Shown in pieces: positions 2,875 to 42,031 of a stretch of 64,000 nt of DNA (its first letter is position 1; each line of letters starts with the position of its first letter). A model generated the notes under the pieces. That model was not told where the DNA came from. It ran no database searches and was given only the letters and a program-made list of their open reading frames with translations. The stretch covers positions 186,001-250,000 of the forward strand of contig NW_025767511.1 of NCBI RefSeq assembly GCF_003918875.1, read 5' to 3'. A program made the translations under genes and the position numbers. This DNA is from Haliotis rubra. Taxonomy: Eukaryota.

Positions 2875-4075
2875 ATGGCTGGAAGTGGACCTGGATTGAA
2901 AACCCCAGACCTGGTGAAGAAGGTCGCTTCTGCCAACTCCCAGTTTGGTCTGGACCTGTACAAGAAAGTCGCCTCAGACCTGAAGGATTCCAATGTGTTT
3001 CTGTCTCCCTTCAGCATCTCGGCAGCTCTGGCCATGACCCAGCTGGGAGCTCGAGGTGACACAGCAGCTCAGATGAACCAGGTCCTGAAGTGGACTGACC
3101 TCCAGGACTCTGTACATCCAGGGTTTGAAGACTATCTGCGTCTTCTGAAAACACATGGAGACTACGTACTTACAACAGCCAACCGCTTGTTTGTGAATGA
3201 TAAGGCCAAGATTCTGGATGAATTTCTACAGAAGACAAAAAGCATTATGGTGCTCAGGCTGTTCTATCTGACTTTGTGGGCAATGGAGCTGGAGAGGCGG
3301 AGAAGATCAACCAATGGGTGGAATCGGAGACCAACAGCAAGATAAAGGATCTGATCACCGGTGGAATCGATCCACTGACAGCTATGATCCTTGTTAATGC
3401 CATATACTTCAAAGGCAACTGGGCAGAGAAATTTGATCCGACAAGGACAGAGAAGGGCACATTTAAGGTGAAGCCTGGAGAGACGGTACAAGTTGATATG
3501 ATGCGGATGAAGAAGAAGTTCAAGTTTGGCCTAAATGATGAACTGAACTGTTCTGTGTTGGAACTGCCTTATGTAAAGGAGGACCTTAGCATGTTTTTCT
3601 TGTTGCCTTACAAGGATGATGGTTTGGGAGAACTGGAAAGCAAACTGAATCATGAATCTTTGACGGAAGCCTTAAAACGCGTGTTCACAAAACTACTGTT
3701 GACATCTCTATGCCCAGATTTGTATTGGAATCAAGTTTTGAGCTGAATGAAGTCCTGAAGTCACTTGGAATGTCTGATGCTTTTGACAAGCAGAAAGCCG
3801 ATCTGTCCGGAATTGATGGAACCCGGCTCCTGTACGTCTCCCAGGTGGTCCACAAGGCCTTCCTGGAAGTGAACGAGGAGGGAAGTGAAGCTGCCGCGGC
3901 CACAGCAGTTACGATCAAGAAAAGATCCCGGCCTATTATTGAGCCTTTCAAGGCAGATCATCCCTTCCTGTTCCTCATCCGTGACAACCGAGCCGATGTT
4001 GTGCTTTTCATGGGCAGACTTTTTCGTCCTCCGACAGCAGGCTCAGCTGGTGTTTCACAGAAATCTGAACTGTAG
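2875..4075 (+). CDS. Serpin copy 1; RCL TIKKR|SRP; C-terminal KSEL; two frameshifts (~3240, ~3680), so pseudogene or assembly error
   Basis: ORFs 2800-3345, 3276-3746 and 3710-4075 jointly give a full serpin (NVFLSPFSIS, LVNAIYFKGNW, EEGSEAAAAT, FKADHPFLFLIRD). An in-frame upstream ATG lies at 2800. Confidence 0.93.
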
Positions 4076-4824
4076 AGCTGTTGATATGATTCTGTTACAG
4101 ATCAATGTTACTGTTATTTTGACTCTCTCCATTGATTTAATGAAGTAGATTGTTTGACTGAAACTATTCATACAACTGAATATTAGTTGAAACCTATTGG
4201 AGGGCTTCTGTTCAATATCATAGGCTGTCATTATGAATGCAGATGACCAATCTTTGACTAACTTTGTTTTAATTTAAACTGTGATCATTCCTTATGGTAT
4301 TAAGGGGCATTTTGTGTTGATAGGAAGTCAAAAGGTTTGGAGAACTGGGAATGCATATCAACTTCTCATCCTTGTATTGAAAGCAGCATTTGAAATTCCT
4401 CGTATTGAGGAAGCATGGTTTAAAATTGGCGCTGATCCGTGGCTTATTGACAGTCTGGAAATCTGATAATTGTCTTCAAACAGTCGTTTCTGGGTCTGTT
4501 AGTTCCTATGGAATTATGATAATGACGATGAATACCAATGTCATAATTAACAATAAGATCCTATATATTGTACTACATTTGCATTGAGAAACATGGTTAA
4601 AGCTGCACATTAAAATTACCCAGGTCAAAGGGTCAGTTCACACTTGCCATTCCTCTGTGTTCCTGAACCTCAGATGCTGTTTACACAAACCTTACCTTGC
4701 CCGACTGTGACACAGAATTTGGCTTATTGCTGGGGATGTCATACCATACATATCTTGATACCAAGCTGCCTGTGAGGGGATAGAAATCACATCTCATCCT
4801 ACCGGGTACCTGTTTATGTCAATA

Positions 4825-5222
4825 TGAGTGAGTGAGCATGGTTTTATGCTGCCTTTAGCAATATTCCAGCAATATCACGGCAGGGGACACCAGCAATGGG
4901 CTTCACACATTGTACCCATGTAGGGAATCGAACCCGGGGTCTTTAGCATGACGAGCTAACGCTTTAACCACTATGCTACCCCACCGCCCCTTATGTCAAT
5001 ATGAACAGAGGATTGTTTTGATCAGACCCACTTGCCTAAGATTGGTTGGTTGGTTGGTGGCACTCAGCAATATTCCAGCTAAATGGCTGCGGTCTGTAAA
5101 TAATCAAGTCTGGACCAGACAAACCAGTGAGCAACAGCATGAGCATCGATCTACAATCAGTGAGCCTGACCACCCGGCAACGTTAGTCGCCACTACGTCA
5201 AGCATGGCTTGCTAAAGACCAA
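4825..5222 (-). mobile_element. SINE family A (4825-4990) followed by SINE family B fragment (5040-5222)
   Basis: Reverse-complement matches to the other copies in the window. Confidence 0.8.
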
Positions 5223-6842
5223 TTTGCTAAACAGCTCAGATGGTTGTGCACAGTTTAACAGGCTGTCAGAAGAAAGTACACATGCATTACTCAAGTCACA
5301 TGCTACCAAGACGACATGGCTCAAGGTCATGTTCTGCCTTTTGTGCCTCGTAAGGATGGGAAAGCCACATTAACTTGGTGCGCCTAGAAGGCAGCAAGAG
5401 TTGTATGATCCCCAGGGAGTTGAGATTGAAAATATGATGTGCCGTTGTGATGGACATCCAATGATCGAGGGAAAACAAATGTCAGTATAATAATAATATT
5501 TAAAGCAGGTCATGTCATATTGCAGGGGGTTAGAGCCCACCCACACATTGCATTTGCTGTTACAGACGTTTTCTGTACTCTGTGTTGAAGTATCTTCATG
5601 TTATTTGTCAGTGATCTGATACAATAGACTGTCAAGAATGTACTGCTGCTTTCAAGCCATGACTCTGAATAGTAACTAGCAAAACCTGTTTGATGTGCTA
5701 AAAATAAACATTGATATTCAAAACACCAACATTTTCTGGTTAAACTGGTTTGAGAGCAGGTTACTTGATCAGGCCAATAAATGAGGTAAATATTTTAAAC
5801 TTTAATGACATTTGGAGTCCTCAAAGATGCATGGGAAGACAAGGTCGCAGGTAACCTCTGCTTGAAGTAAGGCTGACTAAAGTGGTCTGTGTGGCCATGT
5901 TGCTGGGTTTTGTTTTGTTGGGTCATGCTTCAGTCAGTGCTTTGTCTATTCTGTGCAACCAGCAAGAGGTCTGTACATAGTATTCTTGACTGAGATTAAT
6001 CAATGTTCATTTTCAGAAATCCCGATTTTACTTGAGATGCTTTTCCTAAGTTGAGCCATTGATGCTATTCATCTGAATTTTGTGAATAGATGAACAAGAA
6101 GAATGTGTACACGAATGTCATTGTGGTCAGTTGGGTAGTCTGAGGGTTAAAGTGTTTGGTTCTTCTAATGGGTAAAAGTGCAAAGCCGTGTCAGGTGTCC
6201 CTATCATATTGCTGGAATATTGCTAAAAGTAGCATTAAAAAAACAACTCACTCACTCACTCACTAACTCAATTTCATAGTTCAACTATTATATTTTGTTT
6301 ACTAAAAACAGAATGATAAAAATGTCTATCTTTTCTCCTGTTACTCTTTTCCATACTCTTGATCTATCTTAACTGATTCTGAGCACTACTAAACAATTCC
6401 CAGTGGTAATAACATGCCCGAGTATAGTCATGTTCAAATTTCTGTCCAAGAAATGGAAAAATGTTTCGAAATAAAATGAAACTGACCAATTCCTAGTAAG
6501 TATGCCTTGGAAAATCAGTGATGTCTAAACTCTATAATCAAATGATAGATTTGGTTCATACCTCGCTATCATGTCTTTCTGATTCATTTGGCTCAAATAC
6601 TCCCCATTTTCCCCTTCCAGTTCCTAAACATCCTGAAGAATCATCTTTACTGAGAAGATCTGTCACAGTGCGGACTTCAGCTTTGCTTGTTAGGCCTTGA
6701 TCCTTTGCTGTCCAATTCTGCTTCAAATGAACCCACTGACATCCATCTGTAAAAGAACTGAAGAGAATGTTGATGAGACAATTTGCTGTCTTTTCAAGTT
6801 ACCAGAACGTTATTAGTCTTGTGTGATTTCTTCTACAGAACC

Positions 6843-8045
6843 ATGGCTGGAAGTGAAAGTGGACTGAAGACCCCAGACCTGGTGAAGAAGGTCGCTTCTG
6901 CCAATTCCCAGTTTGGTCTGGACCTGTACAAGAAGGTCGCCTTAGAACTGAAGGACTCCAATGTGTTTCTGTCTCCCTTCAGCATCTCGGCAGCTCTGGC
7001 CATGACCCAGCTGGGAGCTCGAGGTGACACAGCAGCTCAGATGAACCAGGTCCTGAAGTGGACTGACATCCAGGACTCCGTACATCCAGGATTTGAAGAC
7101 TATCTGCGTCTTCTGAAAACACAGGGAGACTACGTACTTACAACAGCCAACCGCTTGTTTGTGAATGATAAGGCCAAGATTCTGGATGAATTTCTACAGA
7201 AGACAGAGAAGCATTATGGTGCTCAGGCTGTCCTGTCTGACTTTGTGGGCAATGGAGCTGGAGAGGCGGAGAAGATCAACCAATGGGTGGAATCGGAGAC
7301 CAACAGCAAGATAAAGGATCTGATCACAGGTGGAATCGATCCACTCACAGCTATGATCCTTGTTAATGCCATATATTTCAAAGGCAACTGGGCAGAGAAA
7401 TTTGATCCGACAAGGACAGAGAAGGGCATGTTTAAGGTGAAGCCTGGAGAGACGGTACAAGTTGATATGATGCGGATGGAGAAGAAGTTCAGGTTTGGCC
7501 TAAATGATGAACTGAACTGTTCTGTGTTGGAACTGCCTTATGTAAAGGAGGACCTTAGCATGTTCTTCTTGTTGCCTTACAAGGATGATGGTTTGGGAGA
7601 ACTGGAAAGCAAACTGAATCATGTATCTTTGACGGAAGCCTTAAAACGTGTTGTTCACAAAACTACTGTTGACATCTCTATGCCCAGATTTGTATTGGAA
7701 TCAAGCTTTGAGATGAATGAAGTCCTGAAGTCGCTGGGAATGTCTGATGCTTTTGACAAGCAGAAAGCTGATCTGTCCGGAATTGATGGAACCCGGCTCC
7801 TGTACGTCTCCCAGGTGGTCCACAAGGCCTTCCTGGAAGTGAACGAGGAGGGAAGTGAAGCTGCTGCAGCCACAGCAGTTACGATCATGTTTTTATCCCT
7901 CCCTATCACTGAGCCTTTCAAGGCAGATCATCCCTTCCTGTTCCTCATCCGTGACAACCGAGCCGATGTTGTGCTCTTCATGGGCAGACTTGTTCGTCCT
8001 CCCACAGCAGGCTCAGCTGGTGTTTCACAGAAAACTGAACTGTAG
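6843..8045 (+). CDS. Serpin copy 2 (type A), intact; RCL TIMFL|SLP; C-terminal KTEL
   Basis: Uninterrupted ORF with all serpin motifs; accATGg Kozak context after the ttcttctacag acceptor. Confidence 0.96.
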   Translation: MAGSESGLKTPDLVKKVASANSQFGLDLYKKVALELKDSNVFLSPFSISAALAMTQLGARGDTAAQMNQVLKWTDIQDSVHPGFEDYLRLLKTQGDYVLTTANRLFVNDKAKILDEFLQKTEKHYGAQAVLSDFVGNGAGEAEKINQWVESETNSKIKDLITGGIDPLTAMILVNAIYFKGNWAEKFDPTRTEKGMFKVKPGETVQVDMMRMEKKFRFGLNDELNCSVLELPYVKEDLSMFFLLPYKDDGLGELESKLNHVSLTEALKRVVHKTTVDISMPRFVLESSFEMNEVLKSLGMSDAFDKQKADLSGIDGTRLLYVSQVVHKAFLEVNEEGSEAAAATAVTIMFLSLPITEPFKADHPFLFLIRDNRADVVLFMGRLVRPPTAGSAGVSQKTEL

Positions 8046-8227
8046 AGCTGTTGATATGATTCTGAATTAGATCAACATTAATTAAGTAGATTGTTTGACT
8101 GAAACTATTCAAAGAGCTTCTGACAGTTTCCGGAAGTAGGCTAGTATATTGTTATTGTTTCCCCAGATGAAGGTACAAGAGTTCAGTAGGGATGTAGATA
8201 CTGATGGTTATTGGTATTCTTTACGTG

Positions 8228-8372
8228 TAACACCATATCCGACATTGAGGACCATATCCATAGTTAGAGACCATATCCGTTGTTGAGGGCCATATGTAAA
8301 TTTAAGGACCATATCCATTGTTGAGGACATATGTAATGTTAAGCACCATATCCGTTGTTGAGGACCAAATGT
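8228..8372 (+). repeat. Short minisatellite (gaccatatccrttgttgag-type units) in the serpin 3' flank; repeated after copies 2-6
   Basis: Recurrent accatatcc/ttgagg motif; homologues at ~11780, ~15325, ~18875 and ~23333. Confidence 0.8.
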
Positions 8373-8732
8373 AATGTGGGGAATCAAACCAGGGTCTTCG
8401 GCATGACAAGCCAGTGGTTTAACCACTAGGCTACCCCACTGCCCCTGTGTGAGAATGAACAGAGGATTATTTTGATTAAACCCACTTGCCTTAGAAGCCA
8501 CCACATGTGTTACATGTGCTTCAGTGTGGGGAGGGACTGAACACCCAGAAAATGTCAGGAGTCAAACTGCCGAATGTGGTCATTGATCCAACAACTTCTC
8601 TAATGCAACTTGATTCACCTGATCTGTGAAGTATGCACTTTACACAGGTCAATGTGCTACCACATAATGACAACCCTACAGATGTATATCAACAGAAAAC
8701 TGTATATTTGCTTCACTTATGGTTCAATGGAA

Positions 8733-8738
8733 AATAAA
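8733..8738 (+). terminator. Candidate polyadenylation signal ~690 nt after the copy 2 stop, conserved in each internal unit
   Basis: AATAAA in ggaaaataaattta; the same motif occurs at ~12281, ~15826, ~20287 and ~23833. Confidence 0.4.
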
Positions 8739-10394
8739 TTTATTCAAATTAAAAAGTGCATCTTTCAATGCATATTCACAAAGTCATCTTTACTGAAAGG
8801 TGATGATTATTTTGTTTTACTCTATCACGGGTTTAACTGTTTGTTAGGATTTTCAAAGATGCTTGAGAAGAAAAACTTGGAGGTAACCTCGGCTTGACCT
8901 AAAGTTGACTGAAGTGAATTGGGTGTCCGTGTTGCTTGGTTCGGTGTTGTTGGGTCATGCTTCAGTCAGTGGTTTGCCTATCCCAGATTCTATTATGTTC
9001 CATGAGCAAGATGTCTGGAGATAATCATGATAATAGTCTCGGCTGACATTAATCAATGTTCATTTTCTGAAATCCACATTTGACTCAATGTTTTACGTAA
9101 GTTATGCTATTGCTGTGATTTATCTGAATTTTGTGAGTACCGGTAGATGAACAACAAGAGAGTGTACTGGAATGCCATCAAGGTCAGTTGGGTAGTCTTG
9201 TGCTTAAAGTGTTTGAGTCTTCTCATGGGTAAAACGTGCGAAGCCCGTGTCTGATGTCTCTGTGATATTGTCGGAAAATTGTTAAAAATGGCATAACAAA
9301 CCCAACTCACTCACAATCACACTCACTCACTCAAACTCACTTAAATCCACTCATTCACTCACTGCACTGATATTCCTTGAGTAAGTGAATGAGTAAGTGA
9401 GTTGGTTTCCAGCATTATCATGGCGGGGGACACCAGAAATGGGCTTCACACAAATTACCCATGTGGGGAATCGAACCCTGGCCCTCGGCATGATGAGTGG
9501 AAGCTTTACCCACTAGGCTACCCCACAGTCCCCTGGAGCTGGGCGTATCTGGGCGCTGAATTCAGTTAGATTACATGAGGTAGTTGATTAATATCTTAAA
9601 TATCAGAAGTGGATGCAGAATTTTGAGAAAGAGAATGGAAGTACAAGGACAGTATATCAGATAGATATTAGTAGTATCTGAAAAGGGCACTTCCGGGAAA
9701 TCCCCCACCCCTTGGTTCTGACAGTGAATTTGGGGGATGGATATGTCACAAATGGGAAGCTAAAAGCAAAATAGATTTTAGTACCATGAGGATATATGTT
9801 TGTGTAAAAGGTTTTAGCTGAGTCTACTTTCATAGCTCAGCTATTTTATTTTGTTTTCTACAAAAACAGAATGATAAAGATTTTCTACTGTTGCTTCTCC
9901 TTTTCCGTACTCTTGATCCATCTTAACTGATTGTGAGTGCTACCAAACAATACCCAGCACCACTAACATGCCCAGGTATAGTCATGTTCTTATCTATGTC
10001 TAAGAAATGGGAAAAAAAGGAAACAAAAATGACATGTAACTGCCCAATTATTAGTAAGCCAGCCTTTGAAAACCTGCAGTGTCTTAACTGAATTATCAAT
10101 CGTAGATTTGGTTCATACCTCTCTATCATCTCTTTCTGTATGATTTTGCTCAAATACTCCCCATTTTCCCCTTCCAGTTCCTAAACATCCTGAAGAATCA
10201 TCTTTACTGAGAAGATCTGTCACAGTATGGACTTCAGCTTTGCTTGTTAGGCCTTGATCCTTTGCTGTCCAATTCTGCTTCAAATGAACTGACATTCATC
10301 TGTAAAAGAACTGAAGAATATGTTGATCAGACAATTGTTGTCTTTTCAAGTTACCAGAACATTACTTGTCTTGTGTGATTTCTTCTACAGAACC

Positions 10395-11594
10395 ATGGCT
10401 GGAAGTGGAACTGGACTGAAGACCCCAGACCTGGTGAAGAAGGTCGCTTCTGCCAATTCCCAGTTTGGTCTGGACCTGTACAAGAAGGTCGCCTTAGACC
10501 TGAAGGACTCCAATGTGTTTCTGTCTCCCTTCAGCATCTCAGCAGCTCTGGCCATGACCCAGCTGGGAGCTCGAGGTGACACAGCAGCTCAGATGAACCA
10601 GGTCCTGAAGTGGACTGACATCCAGGACTCCGTACATCCAGGGTTTGAATACTATCTGCGTCTTCTGAAAACACAGGAAGACTACGTACTTACAACAGCC
10701 AACCGCTTGTTTGTGAATGAAAAGGCCAAGATTCTGGATGAATTTCTACAGAAGACAGAGAAGCATTATGGTGCTCAGGCTGTTCTGTCTGACTTTGTGG
10801 GCAATGGAGCTGGAGAGGCTGAGAAGATCAACCAATGGGTGGAATCGGAGACCAACAGCAAGATAAAGGATCTGATCACTGGTGGAATCGATCCACTCAC
10901 AGCTATGATCCTTGTTAATGCCATATACTTCAAAGGCAACTGGGCAGAGAAATTTGATCCGACAAGAACAGAGAAGGGCACATTTAAGGTGAAGCCTGGA
11001 GAGACAGTACAAGTTGATATGATGCGGATGAAGAAGAAGTTCAGGTTTGGCCTAAATGATGAACTGAACTGTTCTGTGTTGGAACTGCCTTATGTAAAGG
11101 AGGACCTTAGCATGTTCTTCTTGTTGCCTGACAAAGATGATGGTTTGGGTGAACTGGAAAGCAAACTGAATCATGTATCTTTGATGGAAGCCTTAAAACG
11201 TGTTCACAAAACTACTGTTAACATCTCTATGCCCAGATTTGTATTGGAATCAAGCTTTGAGATGAATGAAGTCCTGAAGTCACTTGGAATGTCTGATGCT
11301 TTTGATGAGCAGAAAGCCGATCTGTCCGGGATTGATGGAACCCGGCTCCTGTATGTCTCTAAGGTGGTCCACAAGGCCTTCCTGGAAGTCAACGAGGAGG
11401 GAAGTGAAGCTGCCGCGGCCACAGCAGTTATATTCATGAGCAACTCGCTCCCTATAATTGAGCCTTTCAAGGCAGATCATCCCTTCCTGTTCCTCATCCG
11501 TGACAACCGAGCCGATGTTGTGCTCTTCATGGGCAGACTTGTTCGTCCTCCCACAGCAGGCTCAGCTGGTGTTTCACAGAAAACTGAACTGTAG
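10395..11594 (+). CDS. Serpin copy 3 (type B), intact; RCL IFMSN|SLP; KTEL
   Basis: Uninterrupted ORF 10320-11594 including an upstream in-frame ATG; all serpin motifs present. Confidence 0.96.
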   Translation: MAGSGTGLKTPDLVKKVASANSQFGLDLYKKVALDLKDSNVFLSPFSISAALAMTQLGARGDTAAQMNQVLKWTDIQDSVHPGFEYYLRLLKTQEDYVLTTANRLFVNEKAKILDEFLQKTEKHYGAQAVLSDFVGNGAGEAEKINQWVESETNSKIKDLITGGIDPLTAMILVNAIYFKGNWAEKFDPTRTEKGTFKVKPGETVQVDMMRMKKKFRFGLNDELNCSVLELPYVKEDLSMFFLLPDKDDGLGELESKLNHVSLMEALKRVHKTTVNISMPRFVLESSFEMNEVLKSLGMSDAFDEQKADLSGIDGTRLLYVSKVVHKAFLEVNEEGSEAAAATAVIFMSNSLPIIEPFKADHPFLFLIRDNRADVVLFMGRLVRPPTAGSAGVSQKTEL

Positions 11595-13937
11595 AGCCGT
11601 TGATATGATTGTGAATTAGATCAACTTTAATTAAGTAGATTGTTTGACTGAAACTATTCATAGAGCTTCTGACAGTTTCCAGAAGTAGGCTAGTATATTG
11701 TTGTTGTTTCCATAGATGAAGGTTCAAGAGTTCAATAGGGATGTAGATACTGATGGTTATTGGTATTCTTTACATGTAACACCATATCCAACATTGAGGA
11801 CCATATCCATAGTTAGAGACCATATCCGTTGTTGAGGGCCATATGTAAATTTAAGGACCATATCCATTGTTGAGGACATATGTAATGTTAAGCACCATAT
11901 CCGTTGTTGAGGACCAAATGTAATGTGGGGAATCAAACCAGGGTCTTCGGCATGACAAGCCAATGGTTTAACCACTAGGCTACCCCACCGCCCCTGTGTG
12001 AGAATGAACAGAGGATTATTTTGATTAAACCCACTTGCCTTAGAAGCCACCACATGTGTTACATGTGCTTCAGTGTGGGGAGGGACTGAACACCCAGAAA
12101 ATGTCAGGAGTCAAACTGCCGAATGTGGTCATTGATCCATAAATCCTCTAATGCAACTTGATTCACCTGATCTGTGAAGTATGCACTTTACACAGGTCAA
12201 TGTGCTACCACATTATGACAACCCTACAGATGTATATCAACAGAAAACTGTATATTTGCTTCACGTATGGTTCAATGGAAAATAAATTTATTCGAGATTA
12301 AAAAGTGCATCTTTCAATGCATATTCACAATGTCATCTTTACTGAAAGGTGATGATTATTTTGTTTTACTCTATCACGGGTTTAACTGTTTGTTAGGATT
12401 TTCAAAGATGCTTGAGAAGAAAAACTTGGAGGTAACCTCGGCTTGACCTAAAGTTGACTGAAGAGAATTGGGTGTCCGTGTTGCTGGGTTCGGTGTTGTT
12501 GGGTCATGCTTCAGTCAGTGGTTTGCCTATCCCAGATTCTATTATGTTCCATGAGCAAGATGTCTGGAGATAATCATGATAATAATCTCGGCTGACATTA
12601 ATCAATGTTCATTTTCTGAAATCCACATTTGAGGTTTTCGTAAGTTATGCTATTGATGTAATTTATCTGAATTTTGTGAATAGATGAACAACAAGAAAGT
12701 GTACTGGAATGTCATCAAGGTCAGTTGGGTAGTCTTGTGGTTAAAGTGTTTGAGTCTTCTCATGGGTAAAATGTGCGAAGCCTGCGTCTGATGTCCCTGT
12801 GATATTGTCGGAAAATTATTAAAAGTGTAATAAAAAACCCAACTCACTCACAATCACACTCACTCACTCAAACTCACTTAAATTCACTCACTCACTCACT
12901 GCACTGATATTCCTTGAGTAAGTGAGTTGGTTTCCAGCAATATCATGGCGGGGGACACCAGAAATGGGCTTCACACAAATTACCCATGTGGGGAATCGAA
13001 CCCTGGCCCTCGGCATGATGAGTGGAAGCTTTACCCACTAGGCTACCCCACTGTCCCCTGGAGCGCTGGAGCGTATCTGGAGCACTGAATTCAGTAAGAT
13101 TACACAAGTAGTTGATTAATATCTTAAATATCAGAAGTGGATGCAGAATTTTGAGAAAGAGAATGGAAGTACAAGGACAGTATATCAGATAGATATTATC
13201 AAAATCACTGGTAGTATCTGAAAAGGGCACTTCCGGGAAATCCCCCATCCCTTGGTTCTGACAGTGAATTTGGGGGATGGATATGTAACAAATGGGAAGC
13301 TAAAAGCAAAATAGATTTTAGTACCATAAGGATATATGTTTGTGTAAAAGGTTTTAGCTGAGTCTACTTTCATAGCTCAGCTATTTTATTTTGTTTTCTA
13401 CAAAAACAGAATGATAAGGATTTTCTACTGTTGCTTCTCCTTGTCCAAACTCTTGATCCATCTTAACTGATTGTGAGTGCTACTAAACAATACCCAGCAC
13501 CACTAACATGTCCAGGTATAGTCATGTTCTTATCTATGTCCAAGAAATGGGAAAACAGGAAACAAAATGACATGTAACTGCCCAATTATTAGTAAGCATG
13601 CCTTCGAAAACTTGCTGTGTCTTAACTGAATTATCAATCGTAGATTTGGTTCATACCTCTCTATCATCTCTTTCTGTATGACTTTTCTCAAATACTCCCC
13701 ATTTTCCCCTTCCAGTTCCTAAACATCCTGAAGAATCATCTTTACTGAGAAGATCTGTCACAGTATGGACTTCAGCTTTGCTTGTTAGGCCTTGATCCTT
13801 TGCTGTCCAATTCAGCTTCAAATGAACTCACTCACATTCATCTGTAAAAAGAACTGAAGAATATGTTGATCAGACAATTGTTGTCTTTTCAAGTTACCAG
13901 AACATTACTTGTCTTGTGTGATTTCTTCTACAGAACC

Positions 13938-15138
13938 ATGGCTGGAAGTGGAACTGGACTGAAGACCCCAGACCTGGTGAAGAAGGTCGCTTCTGCCAAT
14001 TCCCAGTTTGGTCTGGACCTGTACAAGAAGGTCGCCTTAGAACTGAAGGACTCCAATGTGTTTCTGTCTCCCTTCAGCATCTCAGCAGCTCTGGCCATGA
14101 CCCAGCTGGGAGCTCGAGGGGACACAGCAGCTCAGATGAACCAGGTCCTGAAGTGGACTGACCTCCAGGACTCCGTACATCCAGGGTTTGAAGACTATCT
14201 CGTCTTCTGAAAACACAGGAGACTACGTACTTACAACAGCCAACCGCTTGTTTGTGAATGATAAGGCCAAGATTCTGGATGAATTTCTACAGAAGACAGA
14301 GAAGCATTATGGTGCTCAGGCTGTTCTGTCTGACTTTGTGGGCAATGGAGCTGGAGAGGCGGAGAAGATCAACCAATGGGTGGAATCGGAGACCAACAGC
14401 AAGATAAAGGATCTGATCACAGGTGGAATCGATCCACTCACAGCTATGATCCTTGTTAATGCCATATACTTCAAAGGCAACTGGGCAGAGAAATTTGATC
14501 CGACAAGGACAGAGAAGGGCATGTTTAAGGTGAAGCCTGGAGAGGCAGTACAAGTTGATATGATGCGGATGGAGAAGAAGTTCAGGTTTGGCCTAAATGA
14601 TGAACTGAACTGTTCTGTGTTGGAACTGCCTTATGTAAAGGAGGACCTTAGCATGTTCTTCTTGTTGCCTTACAAGGATGATGGTTTGGGAGAACTGGAA
14701 AGCAAACTGAATCATGTATCTTTGACGGAAGCCTTAAAACGCGTTGTTCACAAAACTACTGTTGACATCTCTATGCCCAGATTTGTATTGGAATCAAGCT
14801 TTGAGATGAATGAAGTCCTGAAGTCGCTGGGAATGTCTGATGCTTTTGACGAGCAGAAAGCTGATCTGTCCGGAATTGATGGAAGTCGCCTCCTGTATGT
14901 CTCTAAGGTGGTCCACAAGGCCTTCCTGGAAGTGAACGAGGAGGGAAGTGAAGCTGCTGCAGCCACAGCAGTTAGGATCATGACAAGATCGCTCCCTATA
15001 ATTGAGCCTTTCAAGGCAGATCATCCCTTCCTGTTCCTCATCCGTGACAACCGAGCCGATGTTGTGCTCTTCATGGGCAGACTTGTTCGTCCTCCCACAG
15101 CAGGCTCAGCTGGTGTTTCACAGAAAACTGAACTGTAG
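13938..15138 (+). CDS. Serpin copy 4 (type A); RCL RIMTR|SLP; KTEL; two single-G losses (~14200, ~14219)
   Basis: ORFs 13863-14210 and 14188-15138. The sequence reads tatctcgt where paralogues have tatctgcgt, and caggagac where they have cagggagac. Confidence 0.93.
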
Positions 15139-17485
15139 AGCTGTTGATATGATTCTGAATTAGATCAACATTAATTAAGTAGATTGTTTGACTGAAACTA
15201 TTCAAAGAGCTGCTGACAGTTTCCGGAAGTAGGCTAGTATATTGTTATTGTTTCCCTAGATGAAGGTATAAGAGTTCAGTAGGGATGTAGATACTGATGG
15301 TTATTGGTATTCTTTACGTGTAACACCATATCCGACATTGAGGACCATATCCATAGTTAGAGACCATATCCGCTGTTGAGGGCCATATGTAAATTTAAGG
15401 ACCATATCCATTGTTGAGGACATATGTAATGTTAAGCACCATATCCGTTGTTGAGGACCAAATGTAATGTGGGGAATCAAACCAGGGTCTTCGGCATGAC
15501 AAGCCAATGGTTTAACCACTAGGCTATCCCACCGCCCCTGTGTGAGAATGAACAGAGGATTATTTTGATTAAACCCACTTGCCTTAGAAGCCACCACATG
15601 TGTTACATGTGCTTCAGTGTGGGGAGGGACTGAACACCCAGAAAATGTCAGGAGTCAAACTGCCGAATGTGGTCATTGATCCAACAACTTCTCTAATGCA
15701 ACTTGATTCACCTGATCTGTGAAGTATGCACTTTACACAGGTCAATGTGCTACCACATAATGACAACCCTACAGATGTATATCAACAGAAAACTGTATAT
15801 TTGCTTCACGCATGGTTCAATGGAAAATAAATTTATTCGAGATTAAAAAGTGCATCTTTCAATGCATATTCACAAAGTCATCTTTACTGAAAGGTGATGA
15901 TTATTTTGTTTTACTCTATCACGGGTTTAACTGTTTGTTAGGATTTTCAAAGATGCTTGAGAAGAAAAACTTGGAGGTAACCTCGGCTTGACCTAAAGTT
16001 GACTGAAGTGAATTGGGTGTCCGTGTTGCTGGGTTCGGTGTTGTTGGGTCATGCTTCAGTCAGTGGTTTGCCTATCCCAGATTCTATTATGTTCCATGAG
16101 CAAGATGTCTGGAGATAATCATGATAATAGTCTCGGCTGACATTAATCAATGTTCATTTTCTGAAATCCACATTTGACTCGATGTTTTACGTAAGTTATG
16201 CTATTGCTGTGATTTATCTGAATTTTGTGAGTACCGGTAGATGAACAACAAGAGAGTGTACTGGAATGCCATCAAGGTCAGTTGGGTAGTCTTGTGCTTA
16301 AAGTGTTTGAGTCTTCTCATGGGTAAAACGTGCGAAGCCCGTGTCTGATGTCTCTGTGATATTGTCGGAAAATTGTTAAAAATGGCATAACAAACCCAAC
16401 TCACTCACAATCACACTCACTCACTCAAACTCACTTAAATCCACTCATTCACTCACTGCACTGATATTCCTTGAGTAAGTGAATGAGTAAGTGAGTTGGT
16501 TTCCAGCATTATCATGGCGGGGGACACCAGAAATGGGCTTCACACAAATTACCCATGTGGGGAATCGAACCCTGGCCCTCGGCATGATGAGTGGAAGCTT
16601 TACCCACTAGGCTACCCCACTGTCCCCTGGAGCTGGAGCGATGTGGGCGCTGAATTCAGTTAGATTACGCAGGTAGTTGATTAATATCTTAAATATCAGA
16701 AGTGGATGCAGAATTTTGAGAAAGAGAATGGAAGTACAAGGACAGTATATCAGATAAATATTAGTAGTATCTGAAAAGGGCACTTCCGGGAAATCCCCCA
16801 CCCCTTGGTTCTGACAGTGAATTTGGGGGATGGATATGTCACAAATGGGAAGCTAAAAGCAAAATAGATTTTAGTACCATGAGGATATATGTTTGTGTAA
16901 AAGGTTTTAGCTGAGTCTACTTTCATAGCTCAGCTATTTTATTTTGTTTTCTACAAAAACAGAATGATAAGGATTTTCTACTGTTGCTTCTCCTTTTCCG
17001 TACTCTTGATCCATCTTAACTGATTGTGAGTGCTACCAAACAATACCCAGCACCACTAACATGCCCAGGTATAGTCATGTTCTTATCTATGTCAAGAAAT
17101 GGGAAAAAAGGAAACAAAAATGACATGTAACTGCCCAATTATTAGTAAGCATGCCTTTGAAAACCTGCAGTGTCTTAACTGAATTATCAATCGTAGATTT
17201 GGTTCATACCTCTCTATCATCTCTTTCTGTATGATTTTGCTCAAATACTCCCCATTTTCCCCTTCCAGTTCCTAAACATCCTGAAGAATCATCTTTACTG
17301 AGAAGATCTGTCACAGTATGGACTTCAGCTTTGCTTGTTAGGCCTTGATCCTTTGCTGTCCAATTCTGCTTCAAATGAACTGACATTCATCTGTAAAAGA
17401 ACTGAAGAATAGGTTGATCAGACAATTGTTGTCTTTTCAAGTTACCAGAACATTACTTGTCTTGTGTGATTTCTTCTACAGAACC

Positions 17486-18688
17486 ATGGCTGGAAGTGGA
17501 ACTGGACTGAAGACCCCAGACCTGGTGAAGAAGGTCGCTTCTGCCAATTCCCAGTTTGGTCTGGACCTGTACAAGAAGGTCGCCTTAGACCTGAAGGACT
17601 CCAATGTGTTTCTGTCTCCCTTCAGCATCTCGGCAGCTCTGGCCATGACCCAGCTGGGAGCTCGAGGGGACACAGCAGCTCAGATGAACCAGGTCCTGAA
17701 GTGGACTGACATCCAGGACTCCTGTACATCCAGGGTTTGAAGACTATCTGCGTCTTCTGAAAACACAGGGAGACTACGTACTTACAACAGCCAACCGCTT
17801 GTTTGTGAATGATAAGGCCAAGATTCTGGATGAATTTCTACAGAAGACAGAGAAGCATTATGGTGCTCAGGCTGTTCTATCTGACTTTGTGGGCAATGGA
17901 GCTGGAGAGGCTGAGAAGATCAACCAATGGGTGGAATCGGAGACCAACAGCAAGATAAAGGATCTGATCACTGGTGGAATCGATCCACTGACAGCTATGA
18001 TCCTTGTTAATGCCATATACTTCAAAGGCAACTGGGCAGAGAAATTTGATCCGACAAGGACAGAGAAGGGCACATTTAAGGTGAAGCCTGGAGAAACAGT
18101 ACAAGTTGATATGATGCGGATGAAGAAGAAGTTCAGGTTTGGCCTAAATGATGAACTGAACTGTTCTGTGTTGGAACTGCCTTATGTAAAGGAGGACCTT
18201 AGCATGTTCTTCTTGTTGCCTGACAAAGATGATGGTTTGGGAGAACTGGAAAGCAAACTGAATCATGAATCTTTGACGGAAGCCTTAAAACGCGTGTTCA
18301 CAAAACTACTGTTAACATCTCTATGCCCAGATTTGTATTGGAATCAAGCTTCAAGCTGAATGAAGTCCTGAAGTCGCTTGGAATGTCTGATGCTTTTGAC
18401 GAGCAGAAAGCCGATCTGTCCGGGATCGATGGAACCCGGCTCCTGTATGTCTCCCAGGTGGTCCACAAGGCCTTCCTGGAAGTGAACGAGGAGGGAAGTG
18501 AAGCTGCTGCAGCCACAGCAGTTATGATCATGTGCAACTCGCTCCCTATAATTGAGCCTTTCAAGGCAGATCATCCCTTCCTGTTCCTCATCCGTGACAA
18601 CCGAGCCGATGTTGTGCTCTTCATGGGCAGACTTGTTCGTCCTCCCACAGCAGGCTCAGCTGGTGTTTCACAGAAAACTGAACTGTAG
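17486..18688 (+). CDS. Serpin copy 5 (type B); RCL MIMCN|SLP; KTEL; frameshifts at ~17722 and ~18293
   Basis: ORFs 17414-17740, 17799-18359 and 18323-18688 together form a complete serpin. Confidence 0.93.
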
Positions 18689-19065
18689 AGCCGTTGATAT
18701 GATTCTGAATTAGATCAACATTAATTAAGTAGATTGTTTGACTGAAACTATTCATAGAGCTTCTGACAGTTTCCAGAAGTAGGCTAGTATATTGTTGTTG
18801 TTTCCCTAGATGAAGGTACAAGAGTTCAATAGGGATGTAGATACTGATGGTTATTGGTATTCTTTACATGTAACACCATATCCAACATTGAGGACCATAT
18901 CCATAGTTAGAGACCATATCCGTTGTTGAGGGCCATATGTAAATTTAAGGACCATATACATTGTTGAGGACATATGTAATGTTAAGGACCATATCCATTG
19001 TTGAGGACCAAATGTAATGTGGGGAATCGAACCAGGGTCTTCGGCGTGACGAGCCAACGCTTTAA

Positions 19066-20009
19066 AGGTCACATGCAACGTAAAACACAACTTTGCAGAT
19101 TCTGATACCTTTCGGTGTGGACATACCGAAACAAATCGTCAAAAATGCAAATTCAAGTTATAAAGTTGAAAAATAACGCGATGAAAAAACACGCGCGAAA
19201 TCGGAGTTCAAACGTTTCACTAATTTTCCCCAGACTTTTCTGGGGAAAACGGGTTTCAACAGCTGGGCTGCGCTCATAGCACGTGCGCAAGTAAATAGGT
19301 TCGCGCAGCTTGGAAGCAGGTTGTCGGGTGAATACTCGGTGAAGGCTTTGGTGTGAGCTATTTTCATAATGTTTTGTTGATATCTCACAGGCGCGAGCTT
19401 TTTATATGTTATGACAGTAAATTAACTGTTTATATAATTTCATTTGTCTATTTCACCACACGTTCTCCTTACCGAGACACTTTCTCAGTTCGATACTTAA
19501 AAGCAATGTCATTATTTAGCGTTGACAGAATTTCTAACTGTGATATAGATATGTCGTTGTCACAGACAAAACAAAATGCATTGATTTATGGCCCGAGTTC
19601 GGTCTCTGTCACATTATGTAATTACACAGACAGGCAGGTGTGATACTTGAACACATGACATGTTATGATGTCTGTTGATTGCAAAATGTTATACACAAAA
19701 AATGAGCATGTATTTACAAAACCCAACATCTCTCTATATATATACACACAATTAGCCGTGAAGGCATCTGCAAATGAACCGGCCGTTACACTTGAGTGCA
19801 CACCCACCCGCTCTGACTGGGTTCGGTATCCCGGCTGCTTCGTTTCTTGGGAAGTAAACCGAAGTACACAATTTTGCACTTTCGATTTGCGATTGTACGC
19901 TTATAATTTTGTTTATATATTTTTTCGTAACCAGCAATGTATATTATATGTCATGAATAAGTGATAATTGTGTTTTAATTATGTTTGATTTTTTGGTTGC
20001 ATGTGACCT
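19066..20009. mobile_element. Non-autonomous DNA transposon with TTAA target duplication (Kolobok-like)
   Basis: 14-bp perfect TIR aggtcacatgcaac/gttgcatgtgacct; TTAA at 19062-19065 and 20010-20013. It interrupts a SINE relic that is contiguous in the other units. Confidence 0.93.
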
Positions 20010-21944
20010 TTAACCATTAGGCTACCCCACTGCCCCCACTTGCCTTAGAAGCCACCACATGTGTTACATGTGCTTCAGTGTGGGGAGGGACTGAACACCC
20101 GGGTAAATGTCAGGAGTCAAACTGCCGACTGTGGTCATTGATCCATAACTCTTCTAATGCAACTTGATTCACATAATCTGTGAAGTATGCACTTTACACA
20201 GGTCAATGTGCTACCACATAATGACAACCCTACAGATGTATATCAACAGAAAACTGTATATTTGCTTCACACATGGTTCAATGGAAAATAAATTTATTCT
20301 GAGATTAAAAGTGCATCTTTCAATGCATATTCACAAAGTCATCTTTACTGAAAGGTGATGATTATTTTGTTTTACTCTATCACGGGTTTAACTGTTTGTT
20401 AGGATTTTCAAAGATGCTTGAGAAGAAAAACTTGGAGGTAACCTCGGCTTGACCTAAAGTTGACTGAAGTGAATTGGGTGTCCGTGTTGCTGGGTTCAGT
20501 GTTGTTGGGTCATGCTTCAGTCAGTGGTTTGCCTATCCCAGATTCTATTATGTTCCATGAGCAAGATGTCTGGAGATAATCATGATAATAATCTCGGCTG
20601 ACATTAATCAATGTTCATTTTCTGAAATCCACATTTGAGGTTTTCGTAAGTTATGCTATTGATGTAATTTATCTGAATTTTGTGAATAGATGAACAACAA
20701 GAAAGTGTACTGGAATGTCATCAAGGTCAGTTGGGTAGTCTTGTGGTTAAAGTGTTTGAGTCTTCTCATGGGTAAAATGTGCGAAGCCTGCGTCTGATGT
20801 CCCTGTGATATTGTCGGAAAATTGTTAAAAGTGTAATAAAAAACCCAACTCACTCACAATCACACTCACTCACTCAAACTCACTTAAATTCACTCACTCA
20901 CTCACTGCACTGATATTCCTTGAGTAAGTGAGTTGGTTTCCAGCAATATCATGGCGGGGGACACCAGAAATGGGCTTCACACAAATTACCCATGTGGGGA
21001 ATCGAACCCTGGCCCTCGGCATGATGAGTGGAAGCTTTACCCACTAGGCTACCCCACTGTCCCCTGGAGCGCTGGAGCGTATCTGGAGCACTGAATTCAG
21101 TAAGATTACACAAGTAGTTGATTAATATCTTAAATATCAGAAGTGGATGCAGAATTTTGAGAAAGAGAATGGAAGTACAAGGACAGTATATCAGATAGAT
21201 ATTATCAAAATCACTGGTAGTATCTGAAAAGGGCACTTCCGGGAAATCCCCCATCCCTTGGTTCTGACAGTGAATTTGGGGGATGGATATGTCACAAATG
21301 GGAAGCTAAAAGCAAAATAGATTTTAGTACCATAAGGATATATGTTTGTGTAAAAGGTTTTAGCTGAGTCTACTTTCATAGCTCAGCTATTTTATTTTGT
21401 TTTCTACAAAAACAGAATGATAAGGATTTTCTACTGTTGCTTCTCCTTGTCCAAACTCTTGATCCATCTTAACTGATTGTGAGTGCTACTAAACAATACC
21501 CAGCACCACTAACATGTCCAGGTATAGTCATGTTCTTATCTATGTCCAAGAAATGGGAAAAACAGGAAACAAAAATGACATGTAACTGCCCAATTATTAG
21601 TAAGCATGCCTTCGAAAACTTGCTGTGTCTTAACTGAATTATCAATCGTAGATTTGGTTCATACCTCTCTATCATCTCTTTCTGTATGACTTTTCTCAAA
21701 TACTCCCCATTTTCCCCTTCCAGTTCCTAAACATCCTGAAGAATCATCTTTACTGAGAAGATCTGTCACAGTATGGACTTCAGCTTTGCTTGTTAGGCCT
21801 TGATCCTTTGCTGTCCAATTCAGCTTCAAATGAACTCACTCACATTCATCTGTAAAAGAACTGAAGAATATGTTGATCAGACAATTGTTGTCTTTTCAAG
21901 TTACCAGAACATTACTTGTCTTGTGTGATTTCTTCTACAGAACC

Positions 21945-23147
21945 ATGGCTGGAAGTGGAACTGGACTGAAGACCCCAGACCTGGTGAAGAAGGTCGCTTC
22001 TGCCAATTCCCAGTTTGGTCTGGACCTGTACAAGAAGGTCGCCTTAGAACTGAAGGACTCCAATGTGTTTCTGTCTCCCTTCAGCATCTCGGCAGCTCTG
22101 GCCATGACCCAGCTGGGAGCTCGAGGTGACACAGCAGCTCAGATGAACCAGGTCCTGAAGTGGACTGACATCCAGGACTCCGTACATCCAGGGTTTGAAG
22201 ACTATCTGCGTCTTCTGAAAACACAGGGAGACTACGTACTTACAACAGCCAACCGCTTGTTTGTGAATGATAAGGCCAAGATTCTGGATGAATTTCTACA
22301 GAAGACAGAGAAGCATTATGGTGCTCAGGCTGTTCTGTCTGACTTTGTGGGCAATGGAGCTGGAGAGGCGGAGAAGATCAACCAATGGGTGGAATCGGAG
22401 ACCAACAGCAAGATAAAGGATCTGATCACAGGTGGAATCGATCCACTGACAGCTATGATCCTTGTTAATGCCATATACTTCAAAGGCAACTGGGCAGAGA
22501 AATTCGATCCGACAAGGACAGAGAAGGGCATGTTTAAGGTGAAGCCTGGAGAGACGGTACAAGTTGATATGATGCGGATGGAGAAGAAGTTCAGGTTTGG
22601 CCTAAATGATGAACTGAACTGTTCTGTGTTGGAACTGCCTTATGTAAAGGAGGACCTTAGCATGTTCTTCTTGTTGCCTTACAAGGATGATGGTTTGGGA
22701 GAACTGGAAAGCAAACTGAATCATGTATCTTTGACGGAAGCCTTAAAACGCGTTGTTCACAAAACTACTGTTGACATCTCTATGCCCAGATTTGTATTGG
22801 AATCAAGCTTTGAGATGAATGAAGTCCTGAAGTCGCTGGGAATGTCTGATGCTTTTGACGAGCAGAAAGCTGATCTGTCCGGAATTGATGGAAGTCGCCT
22901 CCTGTATGTCTCTAAGGTGGTCCACAAGGCCTTCCTGGAAGTGAACGAGGAGGGAAGTGAAGCTGCTGCAGCCACAGCAGTTACATTCATGTTTTTATCC
23001 CTCCCTATCTCTGAGCCTTTCAAGGCAGATCATCCCTTCCTGTTCCTCATCCGTGACAACCGAGCCGATGTTGTGCTCTTCATGGGCAGACTTGTTCGTC
23101 CTCCCACAGCAGGCTCAGCTGGTGTTTCACAGAAAACTGAACTGTAG
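21945..23147 (+). CDS. Serpin copy 6 (type A), intact; RCL TFMFL|SLP; KTEL
   Basis: Uninterrupted ORF 21870-23147. Confidence 0.96.
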   Translation: MAGSGTGLKTPDLVKKVASANSQFGLDLYKKVALELKDSNVFLSPFSISAALAMTQLGARGDTAAQMNQVLKWTDIQDSVHPGFEDYLRLLKTQGDYVLTTANRLFVNDKAKILDEFLQKTEKHYGAQAVLSDFVGNGAGEAEKINQWVESETNSKIKDLITGGIDPLTAMILVNAIYFKGNWAEKFDPTRTEKGMFKVKPGETVQVDMMRMEKKFRFGLNDELNCSVLELPYVKEDLSMFFLLPYKDDGLGELESKLNHVSLTEALKRVVHKTTVDISMPRFVLESSFEMNEVLKSLGMSDAFDEQKADLSGIDGSRLLYVSKVVHKAFLEVNEEGSEAAAATAVTFMFLSLPISEPFKADHPFLFLIRDNRADVVLFMGRLVRPPTAGSAGVSQKTEL

Positions 23148-25491
23148 AGCTGTTGATATGATTCTGAATTAGATCAACATTAATTAAGTAGATTGTTTGA
23201 CTGAAACTATTCAAAGAGCTGCTGACAGTTTCCGGAAGTAGGCTAGTATATTGTTATTGTTTCCCTAGATGAAGGTATAAGAGTTCAGTAGGGATGTAGA
23301 TACTGATGGTTATTGGTATTCTTTACGTGTAACACCATATCCGACATTGAGGACCATATCCATAGTTAGAGACCATATCCGTTGTTGAGGGCCATATGTA
23401 AATTTAAGGACCATATCCATTGTTGAGGACATATGTAATGTTAAGCACCATATCCGTTGTTGAGGACCAAATGTAATGTGGGGAATCAAACCAGGGTCTT
23501 CGGCATGACAAGCCAATGGTTTAACCACTAGGCTATCCCACCGCCCCTGTGTGAGAATGAACAGAGGATTATTTTGATTAAACCCACTTGCCTTAGAAGC
23601 CACCACATGTGTTACATGTGCTTCAGTGTGGGAGGGACTGAACACCAGAAAATGTCAGGAGTCAAACTGCCGAATGTGGTCATTGATCCAACAACTTCTC
23701 TAATGCAACTTGATTCACCTGATCTGTGAAGTATGCACTTTACACAGGTCAATGTGCTACCACATAATGACAACCCTACAGATGTATATCAACAGAAAAC
23801 TGTATATTTGCTTCACGTATGGTTCAATGGAAAATAAATTTATTCGAGATTAAAAGTGCATCTTTCAATGCATATTCACAAAGTCATCTTTACTGAAAGG
23901 TGATGATTATTTTGTTTTACTCTATCACGGGTTTAACTGTTTGTTAGGATTTTCAAAGATGCTTGAGAAGAAAAACTTGGAGGTAACCTCGGCTTGACCT
24001 AAAGTTGACTGAAGAGAATTGGGTGTCCGTGTTGCTGGGTTGGGTGTTGTTGGGTCATGCTTCAGTCAGTGGTTTGCCTATCCCAGATTCTATTATGTTC
24101 CATGAGCAAGATGTCTGGAGATAATCATGATAATAATCTCGGCTGACATTAATCAATGTTCATTTTCTGAAATCCACATTTGACTCGATGTTTTACGTAA
24201 GTTATGCTATTGATGTGATTTATCTGAATTTTGTGAGTAGATGAACAACAAGAGAGTGTACTGGAATGCCATCAAGGTCAGTTGGGTAGTCTTGTGCTTA
24301 AAGTGTTTGAGTCTTTTCATGGGTAAAACGTGCGAAGCCCGTGTCTGATGTCTCTGTGATATTGTCGGAAAATTGTTAAAAATGGCATAAAAAACCCAAC
24401 TCACTCACAATCACACTCACTCACTCAAACTCACTTAAATCCACTCATTCACTCACTGCACTGATATTCCTTGAGTAAGTGAATGAGTAAGTGAGTTGGT
24501 TTCCAGCATTATCATGGCGGGGGACACCAGAAATGGGCTTCACACAAATTACCCATGTGGGGAATCGAACCCTGGCCCTCGGCATGATGAGTGGAAGCTT
24601 TACCCACTAGGCTACCCCACTGTCCCCTGGAGCGCTGGAGCGTATCTGGAGCGCTGAATTCAGTTAGATTACGCAGGTAGTTGATTAATATCTTAAATAT
24701 CAGAAGTGGATGCAGAATTTTGAGAAAGAGAATGGAAGTACAAGGACAGTATATCAGATAAATATTAGTAGTATCTGAAAAGGGCACTTCCGGGAAATCC
24801 CCCATCCCTTGGTTCTGACAGTGAATTTGGGGGATGGATATGTCACAAATGGGAAGCTAAAAGCAAAATAGATTTTAGTACCATGAGGATATATGTTTGT
24901 GTAAAAGGTTTTAGCTGAGTCTACTTTCATAGCTCAGCTATTTTATTTTGTTTTCTACAAAAACAGAATGATAAGGATTTTCTACTGTTGCTTCTCCTTT
25001 TCCGTACTCTTGATCCATCTTAACTGATTGTGAGTGCTACCAAACAATACCCAGCACCACTAACATGCCCAGGTATAGTCATGTTCTTATCTATGTCTAA
25101 GAAATGGGAAAAAAAGGAAACAAAAATGACATGTAACTGCCCAATTATTAGTAAGCATGCCTTTGAAAACCTGCAGTGTCTTAACTGAATTATCAATCGT
25201 AGATTTGGTTCATACCTCTCTATCATCTCTTTCTGTATGATTTTGCTCAAATACTCCCCATTTTCCCCTTCCAGTTCCTAAACATCCTGAAGAATCATCT
25301 TTACTGAGAAGATCTGTCACAGTATGGACTTCAGCTTTGCTTGTTAGGCCTTGATCCTTTGCTGTCCAATTCTGCTTCAAATGAACTGACATTCATCTGT
25401 AAAAGAACTGAAGAATATGTTGATCAGACAATTGTTGTCTTTTCAAGTTACCAGAACATTACTTGTCTTGTGTGATTTCTTCTACAGAACC

Positions 25492-31098: not shown

Positions 31099-31169
31099 CA
31101 TTGGGGAACAAGGTTCCATTTTTTGTATCCTTACCAAAAGTTATTTGTTTTTGTAGAGGTGGTGGGAAG

Positions 31170-41891: not shown

Positions 41892-42031
41892 NNNNNNNNN
41901 NNNNNNNNNNNNNNNNNNNNNNNNNNNNNNNNNNNNNNNNNNNNNNNNNNNNNNNNNNNNNNNNNNNNNNNNNNNNNNNNNNNNNNNNNNNNNNNNNNNN
42001 NNNNNNNNNNNNNNNNNNNNNNNNNNNNNNN
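41892..42031. other. Assembly gap (140 N)
   Basis: Run of N. Confidence 1.

Follow-up and report, generated by a model that had tools for sequence, protein, structure and literature searches.

Serpins with hypervariable reactive centres are known from the rodent Serpina3/Spi2 clusters and from insect serpins with alternative bait exons. Among animal endopeptidases, strict specificity for Asn is the property of legumain (family C13, clan CD), and cystatins are its main control in animals. Here we describe seven tandem serpin genes of the blacklip abalone, Haliotis rubra, two of which present Asn at the canonical P1 position of the reactive loop. They lie in a window of 64,000 nucleotides, the whole stretch that we analysed (RefSeq assembly GCF_003918875.1, contig NW_025767511.1, positions 186,001 to 250,000 of the forward strand). 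Three described systems bear on a possible link to legumain. The legumain-binding loop of cystatin M/E carries Ser38 at P2, Asn39 at P1 and Ser40 at P1' (PMC9604545). Caspases, which also belong to clan CD, are inhibited by serpins (PMC7863939). Finally, SERPINB7 is reported to inhibit legumain (pmid 38909841, as cited in PMC12848094, PMC13293874 and PMC11883851).

The two Asn genes, copies 3 and 5 of the array, have the following features, with a slash marking the P1-P1' bond of each bait here and below:

10395..11594, + strand: copy 3, B type, an intact open reading frame of 399 codons (MAGSG...KTEL, stop included), bait IFMSN/S
11394..11429, + strand: copy 3 hinge, P17 to P6, E E G S E A A A A T A V, inhibitory-type consensus
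11430..11447, + strand: copy 3 bait, P5 to P1', ATA TTC ATG AGC AAC TCG = I F M S N S, P1 codon AAC at 11442-11444
17486..18688, + strand: copy 5, B type, bait MIMCN/S, broken as assembled
18524..18541, + strand: copy 5 bait, P5 to P1', ATG ATC ATG TGC AAC TCG = M I M C N S, P1 codon AAC at 18536-18538

A sequence-only reading of this DNA had located the baits at 11430 and 18524, which are exactly the first P5 bases of copies 3 and 5, and had assigned Asn to the canonical P1 position. Our alignment agrees. When copy 3 was aligned with HMMER to conserpin with the alpha-1-antitrypsin loop, the match was gap-free from the hinge through P3' and Asn stood opposite Met358, the known P1. The count from the hinge gives the same answer: the hinge Glu is residue 334 and Asn is residue 350, so the loop from P17 to P1 has the canonical length of 17 residues. 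The same reading had Asn retained between the copies while P5, P4 and P2 changed, and this is borne out, with one replacement base at each of the three positions and no silent difference. At P3 (Met, ATG) and at P1 (AAC) the two copies have the same codons.

The rest of the protein is of the inhibitory type. The copy 3 hinge is identical in all seven copies, and the bait is followed by S-L/R-P-I. The hinge fits the consensus of inhibitory serpins (P17 Glu, P15 Gly, P14 Ser/Thr, small residues at P12-P9, no Pro or charge), and the spacing to the F-x-A-D-H-P-F strand (the s1C motif) in copy 3 is the commonest among its relatives. The Pfam Serpin profile (PF00079) matches copy 3 over model positions 2-370 of 370 (E 4.3e-125), a full-length domain of the serpin superfamily (MEROPS I4). 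Copy 3 also matched 209 solved serpin sequences, the best natural one being human SERPINB1 (4ga7, E 2.6e-90). Its protein is 100% identical to H. rubra XP_046551365.1 and isoforms, named 'leukocyte elastase inhibitor-like' by RefSeq. An AlphaFold2 model of copy 3 has a mean predicted local distance difference test score (pLDDT) of 85.3 and a predicted template modelling score of 0.85, with pLDDT below 50 only at residues 1-7, 338-352 (the reactive loop) and 389-399 (the tail). In this model the Asn lies in the accessible, disordered reactive loop. The main 399-residue frame begins MAGSGTGLKTPDLVKK, with no hydrophobic leader (by eye), and continues past the serpin core into a 14-residue C-terminal tail (PTAGSAGVSQKTEL) that ends in KTEL and is disordered in the model.

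On these sequence data, copies 3 and 5 are predicted inhibitory members of the serpin superfamily, in agreement with every sequence test for such serpins. Because hinge, loop length and fold are all of the inhibitory type, the default expectation is suicide-substrate trapping of an enzyme that cuts the P1-P1' bond. We also considered the P1 Asn as an N-glycosylation site and rejected this, as N-S-L is not a sequon (by eye).

P1 Asn is rare among serpins, as the sequence-only reading had also held. Counting from the hinge in the same way in the 120 best database relatives and their cluster members gave 131 tabulated proteins, abalone copies included. P1 is Arg in 77 of the 131, and among 112 related non-abalone serpins a single one has P1 Asn (P0052). 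A search of the literature available to us found no natural P1-Asn serpin described. Serp-1 was rejected as such a case because the Asn there is P1', not P1.

The array to which copies 3 and 5 belong is laid out as follows, together with a more distant relative downstream:

2875..26694, + strand: serpin array, seven tandem genes, found by tblastn with intact copy 3 and a motif scan
2875-4075, + strand: copy 1, B type, bait TIKKR/S, broken as assembled
between copies 1 and 3, + strand: copy 2, A type, bait TIMFL/S
13938-15138, + strand: copy 4, A type, bait RIMTR/S, broken as assembled
between copies 5 and 7, + strand: copy 6, A type, bait TFMFL/S
last in the array, + strand: copy 7, B type, bait RIMTR/S
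31101-32330: eighth serpin, 44% identical to copy 3 (tblastn)

The copies are spaced ~3.5 kb apart, all on the + strand, and are 92-97% identical in protein to copy 3 (piecewise tblastn). Variable scaffold sites alternate along the array, copies 2, 4 and 6 (A) sharing one state and copies 1, 3, 5 and 7 (B) the other, and the repeating unit is a two-gene A/B block of 7091 bp. Copies 3 and 5 are exactly 7091 bp apart, and therefore the array grew by duplication of this two-gene unit.

Replacement changes in the array are concentrated in the bait. Over the scaffold, the seven copies differ by 0.064 at silent sites and 0.012 at replacement sites, a ratio of ~0.19, and the replacement difference at P5-P1 is 0.40. 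Counted as minimal changes per codon column, the five codons P5-P1 hold 11 replacement changes and 1 silent change against 29 and 45 in the other 393 codons (Fisher P 0.001 for bait versus scaffold; Poisson P 3e-13 for the density of changes). Between copies 3 and 5, ~0.12 replacements would be expected at P5-P1 at the background rate and 3 are seen (Poisson P ~3e-4). The copy 3 scaffold has a ratio of replacement to silent differences per site (pN/pS) of 0.16-0.22 against the other copies. These data indicate that the gene outside the bait is under purifying selection. Silent-site differences of 0.02-0.09 between copies mark the array as young.

Copies 4 and 7 have base-identical baits (AGG ATC ATG ACA AGA, within 14938-15010 and 26494-26566) on A-type and B-type scaffolds, respectively, and copy 4 groups with the Leu copies 2 and 6 in a tree built without the bait columns. 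Because copy 4 joins the scaffold of the Leu copies to the bait of copy 7, gene conversion or recombination acts here. Both Asn copies are B-type, which would fit one Asn origin in H. rubra followed by duplication of the unit.

We compared the locus with that of other abalones. In H. asinina it holds a single Arg-type gene (RIMTR/S) and then the eighth serpin; in H. cracherodii, RIMTR/S is followed by a diverged copy reading IVLQR/KR. H. discus discus has a RIMTR/S complementary DNA, and relatives from the snail Gigantopelta read RIQTR/S-L-P-I-I. The Arg baits in these four therefore point to Arg as the ancestral P1. No Asn copy was seen at the locus in H. asinina or H. cracherodii. H. rufescens has RIMTR/S plus an intact RefSeq copy, RVMTN/S, 6.6 kb downstream. 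The bait codons of the Asn copy, AGG GTT ATG ACA AAT, differ at three bases from AGG ATT ATG ACA AGA in the Arg copy. Two of the three bases of the P1 codon are changed, compared with 29 of ~1200 sites between the two copies (chance ~0.002), and the sole non-conservative change falls at canonical P1.

The H. rufescens Arg copy (L001 10054-11285) and Asn copy (17889-19123) are 97% alike only from ~20 bases before the ATG to just past the stop, and their flanks are 77-79% similar or unalignable. This pattern would be explained by gene conversion confined to the coding exon or, alternatively, by copying of the exon into another array position. The upstream flank of the Asn copy matches that of the second array position in H. 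cracherodii (86-88%), whereas upstream of all H. rubra copies lies the flank that belongs to the Arg gene, collinear with H. asinina over ~800 bases. In a maximum-likelihood tree without the bait columns, the copies group by lineage and at least two Asn origins are needed. Silent differences are 0.06 within each of the two species, H. rubra and H. rufescens, and 0.30-0.34 between them. The different flanks, the tree, the codons AAC and AAT and the distribution among species therefore argue that Arg changed to Asn independently in two abalone lineages, and from the sequences we conclude that the change very probably arose at least twice, each time by two base changes. On the same grounds, a single Asn origin shared by H. 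rubra and H. rufescens was judged unlikely. The idea that the H. rufescens Asn copy is an old paralog, suggested by the 77-79% flanks, was dropped because comparison with H. cracherodii shows this Asn copy to be an Arg-type exon in the flanks of another array position. Since it arose a second time from Arg in H. rufescens, the P1 Asn residue looks selected.

Diverged array members with the baits SVQLM/CC and VVRKR/KR or IVLQR/KR, the latter polybasic and convertase-like, also occur in Californian abalones (L001 22534-23706 and about 28414; L003 17206-18378).

P1 Asn is present beyond the assembled individual. In X1, a genome-sized DNA run with organism label A, a bait contig reads ATA TTC ATG ACC AAC (IFMTN), with Thr at P2 compared with copy 3. 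In the DNA run X10 (organism label B), contigs cover 18523-18527, 18533-18534 and 18538 of the copy 5 bait with no differing letters. The depth of X10 at the copy 5 P2 letters is 80 versus ~690 for shared parts, and its copy-5-type bait looks single-copy. Two small runs guessed to be RNA yielded bait contigs of Arg types only, MIMAR (X4) and RIMTR. Individuals seem to vary in bait alleles or in the copy number of the array. The variants IFMTN (X1) and MIMAR (X4), found in the 18124-18691 region, are absent from the window.

The sequence-only reading missed one caveat: as assembled, copy 5 has no full-length reading frame. It lies in three frame pieces: a surplus T stands at 17723, and at about 18293-18296 the sequence is in a state one base too short. 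At the latter site the A-type copies have one base more than copy 5 and copies 3 and 7 have two fewer; copy 1 is in the same odd state as copy 5. The NCBI model of copy 5 is a LOW QUALITY PROTEIN (XP_046551369.1). Logan contigs were mapped on 17300-18800 from four public runs, which come from three studies and carry two organism labels. The extra T is absent from all contigs of the four runs that cross 17721-17723, and every contig crossing 18290-18296 is in one of two in-frame states, none in the broken state; since Logan contigs drop rare variants and may hop between near-identical copies, this is missing support and not proof of absence. The two in-frame states seem to have been merged into one consensus in the broken state, as a polishing error in a tandem repeat would do, and the frameshifts may be assembly errors. 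The copy 5 scaffold gives no sign of decay (pN/pS 0.08-0.24 against the other copies). We lean towards copy 5 being an intact gene in nature. Its status as a settled pseudogene was rejected as unproven, given that the frameshifts occur in no contig of the four runs and that constraint is not relaxed. Two single-base deletions lie near 14200-14230 in copy 4, ~20 bases from each other, and copy 1 also has two, one of them common to copy 5; these too are maybe assembly errors, as suspected for copy 5.

What do the Asn copies inhibit? Like the sequence-only reading, we tentatively favour legumain, of host or parasite, as the most likely target class, by analogy with the systems introduced above. 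Human legumain, tested for hydrolysis with a single peptide scaffold, prefers P1' Ser and, at P2, Ser, Cys, Ala, Arg or Glu (PMC13052201). These preferences fit both S-N/S of copy 3 and C-N/S of copy 5; the P2 Thr of the H. rufescens copy falls outside the residues listed as favoured. Legumain transcripts are expressed in abalone (PMC8290317). Copies 3 and 5 would then be variants in specificity of a single inhibitory serpin, intracellular and clade-B-like. An ancestral Arg-bait gene (RIMTR/S) would have been tandemly duplicated in the H. rubra lineage, and selection would have rewritten the five bait codons P5-P1 while the scaffold was kept. One B-type copy would have changed its P1 from Arg to Asn and been duplicated with its neighbour. 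Asn would have persisted in the daughters 3 and 5 as P5, P4 and P2 changed by drift or adaptation; in H. rufescens the same Arg to Asn change would have happened independently. The protein would presumably act by the usual suicide-substrate route, in which the target cleaves the Asn-Ser bond, is held as an acyl (thioester) intermediate and is dragged across the serpin during loop insertion. The legumain in question may be a parasite's or the host's own, the latter leaked, for example, from lysosomes.

Several points weigh against a legumain target. In the literature available to us we found no published assay and no described natural P1-Asn serpin acting on legumain, and the proposed mechanism is one of analogy. 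Legumain is most active at acid pH, in lysosomes, and thioester intermediates are labile. Set against this acid-pH, lysosomal enzyme, a main frame with no evident signal peptide and a KTEL end puts co-location in doubt. Near neutral pH, legumain can re-ligate cleaved Asn-Ser bonds (PMC9604545), which may defeat trapping. Copy 5 is frameshifted as assembled, and neither of the two putative RNA runs has an Asn-type bait contig, although contigs cannot show absence. Lastly, gene conversion acts in these arrays and leaves a small residual chance of a single old Asn origin with later homogenisation.

The alternative that survives best, raised for the P3 Met by the sequence-only reading, moves the scissile bond away from Asn-Ser. 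A chymotrypsin- or elastase-like serine protease would cut after the conserved Met at canonical P3, or a papain-like cathepsin would seat Met in S2 and cut P2-P1, with Asn as a prime-side residue that tunes affinity. The P3 Met is kept in 6 of the 7 copies and in both H. rufescens copies, and the variable residues flank it symmetrically, P5 and P4 on one side and P2 and P1 on the other. SERPINB3 with cathepsins is a reported precedent for a P2-P1 cut of this kind. Inhibition by serpins also reaches across protease classes to cathepsins K, L and S (PMC7863939). However, a cut at Met would leave two residues fewer in the inserted loop, a loss that the serpin mechanism does not tolerate well. The prevalence of Arg at the canonical position in our survey marks that position as the working P1 of the ancestral type, and in H. 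rufescens it is again canonical P1 that bears the sole non-conservative change, one that took two base substitutions within a single codon. We regard a cut at or next to Met as unlikely.

Next, the target may be a serine protease that accepts P1 Asn, either broad in specificity or unusual (subtilisin-like, for example), and may come from a pathogen or from the abalone; the array would then be an arms-race panel in which legumain plays no part. A hypervariable bait on a conserved scaffold is the usual signature of serpins that face varied proteases, and the further bait variants IFMTN and MIMAR in other individuals or runs add to this picture. Yet we know of no serine protease class that prefers Asn at P1, and our literature search found none. 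Two independent two-step changes to the same rare residue also argue for an Asn-specific target. We consider a serine protease target quite doubtful.

Least tenable of these alternatives, and in our view distinctly improbable, is that the Asn copies have no selected target and are by-products of rapid bait turnover, copy 5 being a pseudogene and Asn transient: the youth of the array, the frames of copies 1, 4 and 5 as assembled and the Arg-only contigs of the putative RNA runs speak for it, but copy 3 is intact on a scaffold under purifying selection, contigs of the four runs lend no support to the copy 5 frameshifts, H. rufescens evolved an intact Asn copy of its own, the Asn-type bait IFMTN occurs in the DNA run X1, and copy-5-type letters occur in X10, under another organism label.

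A bolder version of the legumain proposal takes in the whole locus. P1 residues here are Arg, Leu and Asn in the array and Asp in the eighth serpin (DCVD/G). Strict P1 needs among clan CD peptidases are Arg for metacaspase/clostripain-type enzymes, Leu for the processing domains of Vibrio MARTX-type toxins, Asn for legumain and Asp for caspases. The two sets coincide, which suggests that the locus could be a panel of baits against clan CD cysteine peptidases and not serine proteases, its Asn members being the first natural suicide inhibitors of legumain, evolved twice under pressure from host or parasite asparaginyl endopeptidases. We think this very improbable.

The coding sequence of every array copy is a single uninterrupted exon, and upstream splice signals are present:

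10379..10390, + strand: pyrimidine tract and AG splice acceptor of copy 3, 4 bases 5' of the ATG; the same motif precedes all copies
5925..5968, + strand: upstream 5' exon with a GT donor at 5969, matching the N-terminus of RefSeq isoform X2 (P0001)

In the RefSeq isoform X2 model of copy 3, the exon at 5925-5968 is joined to the copy 3 acceptor and copy 2 is skipped; the model hints at RNA reads as its basis. The upstream exon adds a partly hydrophobic leader of 16 residues, MLQSVLCLFCATSKRT. Two alternative 5' exons with GT donors, 5805-5865 and 5925-5968, lie between copies 1 and 2, and RefSeq models splice one to copy 2 and the other to copy 3. Versions of these exons that are ~75% similar occur in every other spacer, e.g. 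8853-9136 and 12402-12691. No transfer RNA or known RNA family was found in the spacers within 11595-17485.

By hinge count, P5-P1 of the eighth serpin (32151-32240) is D-C-V-D-G, and its loop is one residue longer before the s1C strand. The same bait occurs in the neighbouring gene in H. asinina (L002, about 16034). The window also contains a reverse-transcriptase fragment upstream of the array, a leucine-rich-repeat reading frame at the far end of the window, and three long arrays of tandem repeats, strongly GC-skewed, whose periods are 35, 34 and 44 bases:

339-1325: reverse-transcriptase fragment
61868-63106: leucine-rich-repeat frame
33010-33715, 47664-48905 and 52561-53350: the three tandem-repeat arrays
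41892-42031: run of N

If the legumain proposal is true, a P1-Asn serpin that evolved twice from Arg types would be a clean model of the serpin trap against an Asn-specific clan CD enzyme, and inhibitors specific to legumain could readily be built on it. In the farmed, disease-prone abalones it would further be a candidate for controlling lysosomal or parasite proteolysis. Even with no legumain target, the locus shows in compact form how baits can diversify and stay diverse in the face of gene conversion, with a rare convergent outcome.

How does this locus compare with the known systems? The only serpin link to legumain that we found is the recent report on SERPINB7 (megsin); it is the one precedent found for such a pair, and orthology with the abalone genes is not implied. 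The canonical P1 of SERPINB7 is not known to be Asn. SERPINB1 and the clade-B serpins resemble the abalone copies in having no evident signal peptide in the main frame, the same hinge and the same spacing from hinge to F-x-A-D-H-P-F. In contrast to SERPINB1, where P1 is Cys/Phe, copies 3 and 5 have Asn, and the abalone proteins carry the 14-residue C-terminal KTEL tail, which is absent from clade B. The abalone coding sequence also differs from these in being intronless and part of a tandem array. CrmA, SERPINB9 and Serp2 demonstrate that the serpin trap holds clan CD peptidases when P1 fits a strict S1 pocket (PMC7863939). They differ in having P1 Asp (or Glu) and caspase targets, and the CrmA loop is shortened whereas the abalone loop has the canonical length. 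The cystatin M/E loop, S-N/S, is identical to P2-P1-P1' of copy 3 (PMC9604545), a three-residue match that could easily be chance. Unlike the abalone serpins, cystatin M/E has an unrelated fold and is a tight, reversible, substrate-like inhibitor with no suicide trap.

The layout of the locus resembles that of the rodent Serpina3/Spi2 clusters and the insect serpins, with which it shares a conserved scaffold, accelerated replacement restricted to the bait and a tandem or cassette arrangement. It departs from them in repeating whole one-exon genes, in a scaffold homogenised by gene conversion and in the recurrent P1 Asn. Hypervariable baits in tandem serpin families are thus known already; what is new in the abalones is a canonical P1 Asn in intact genes and its convergence in two species.

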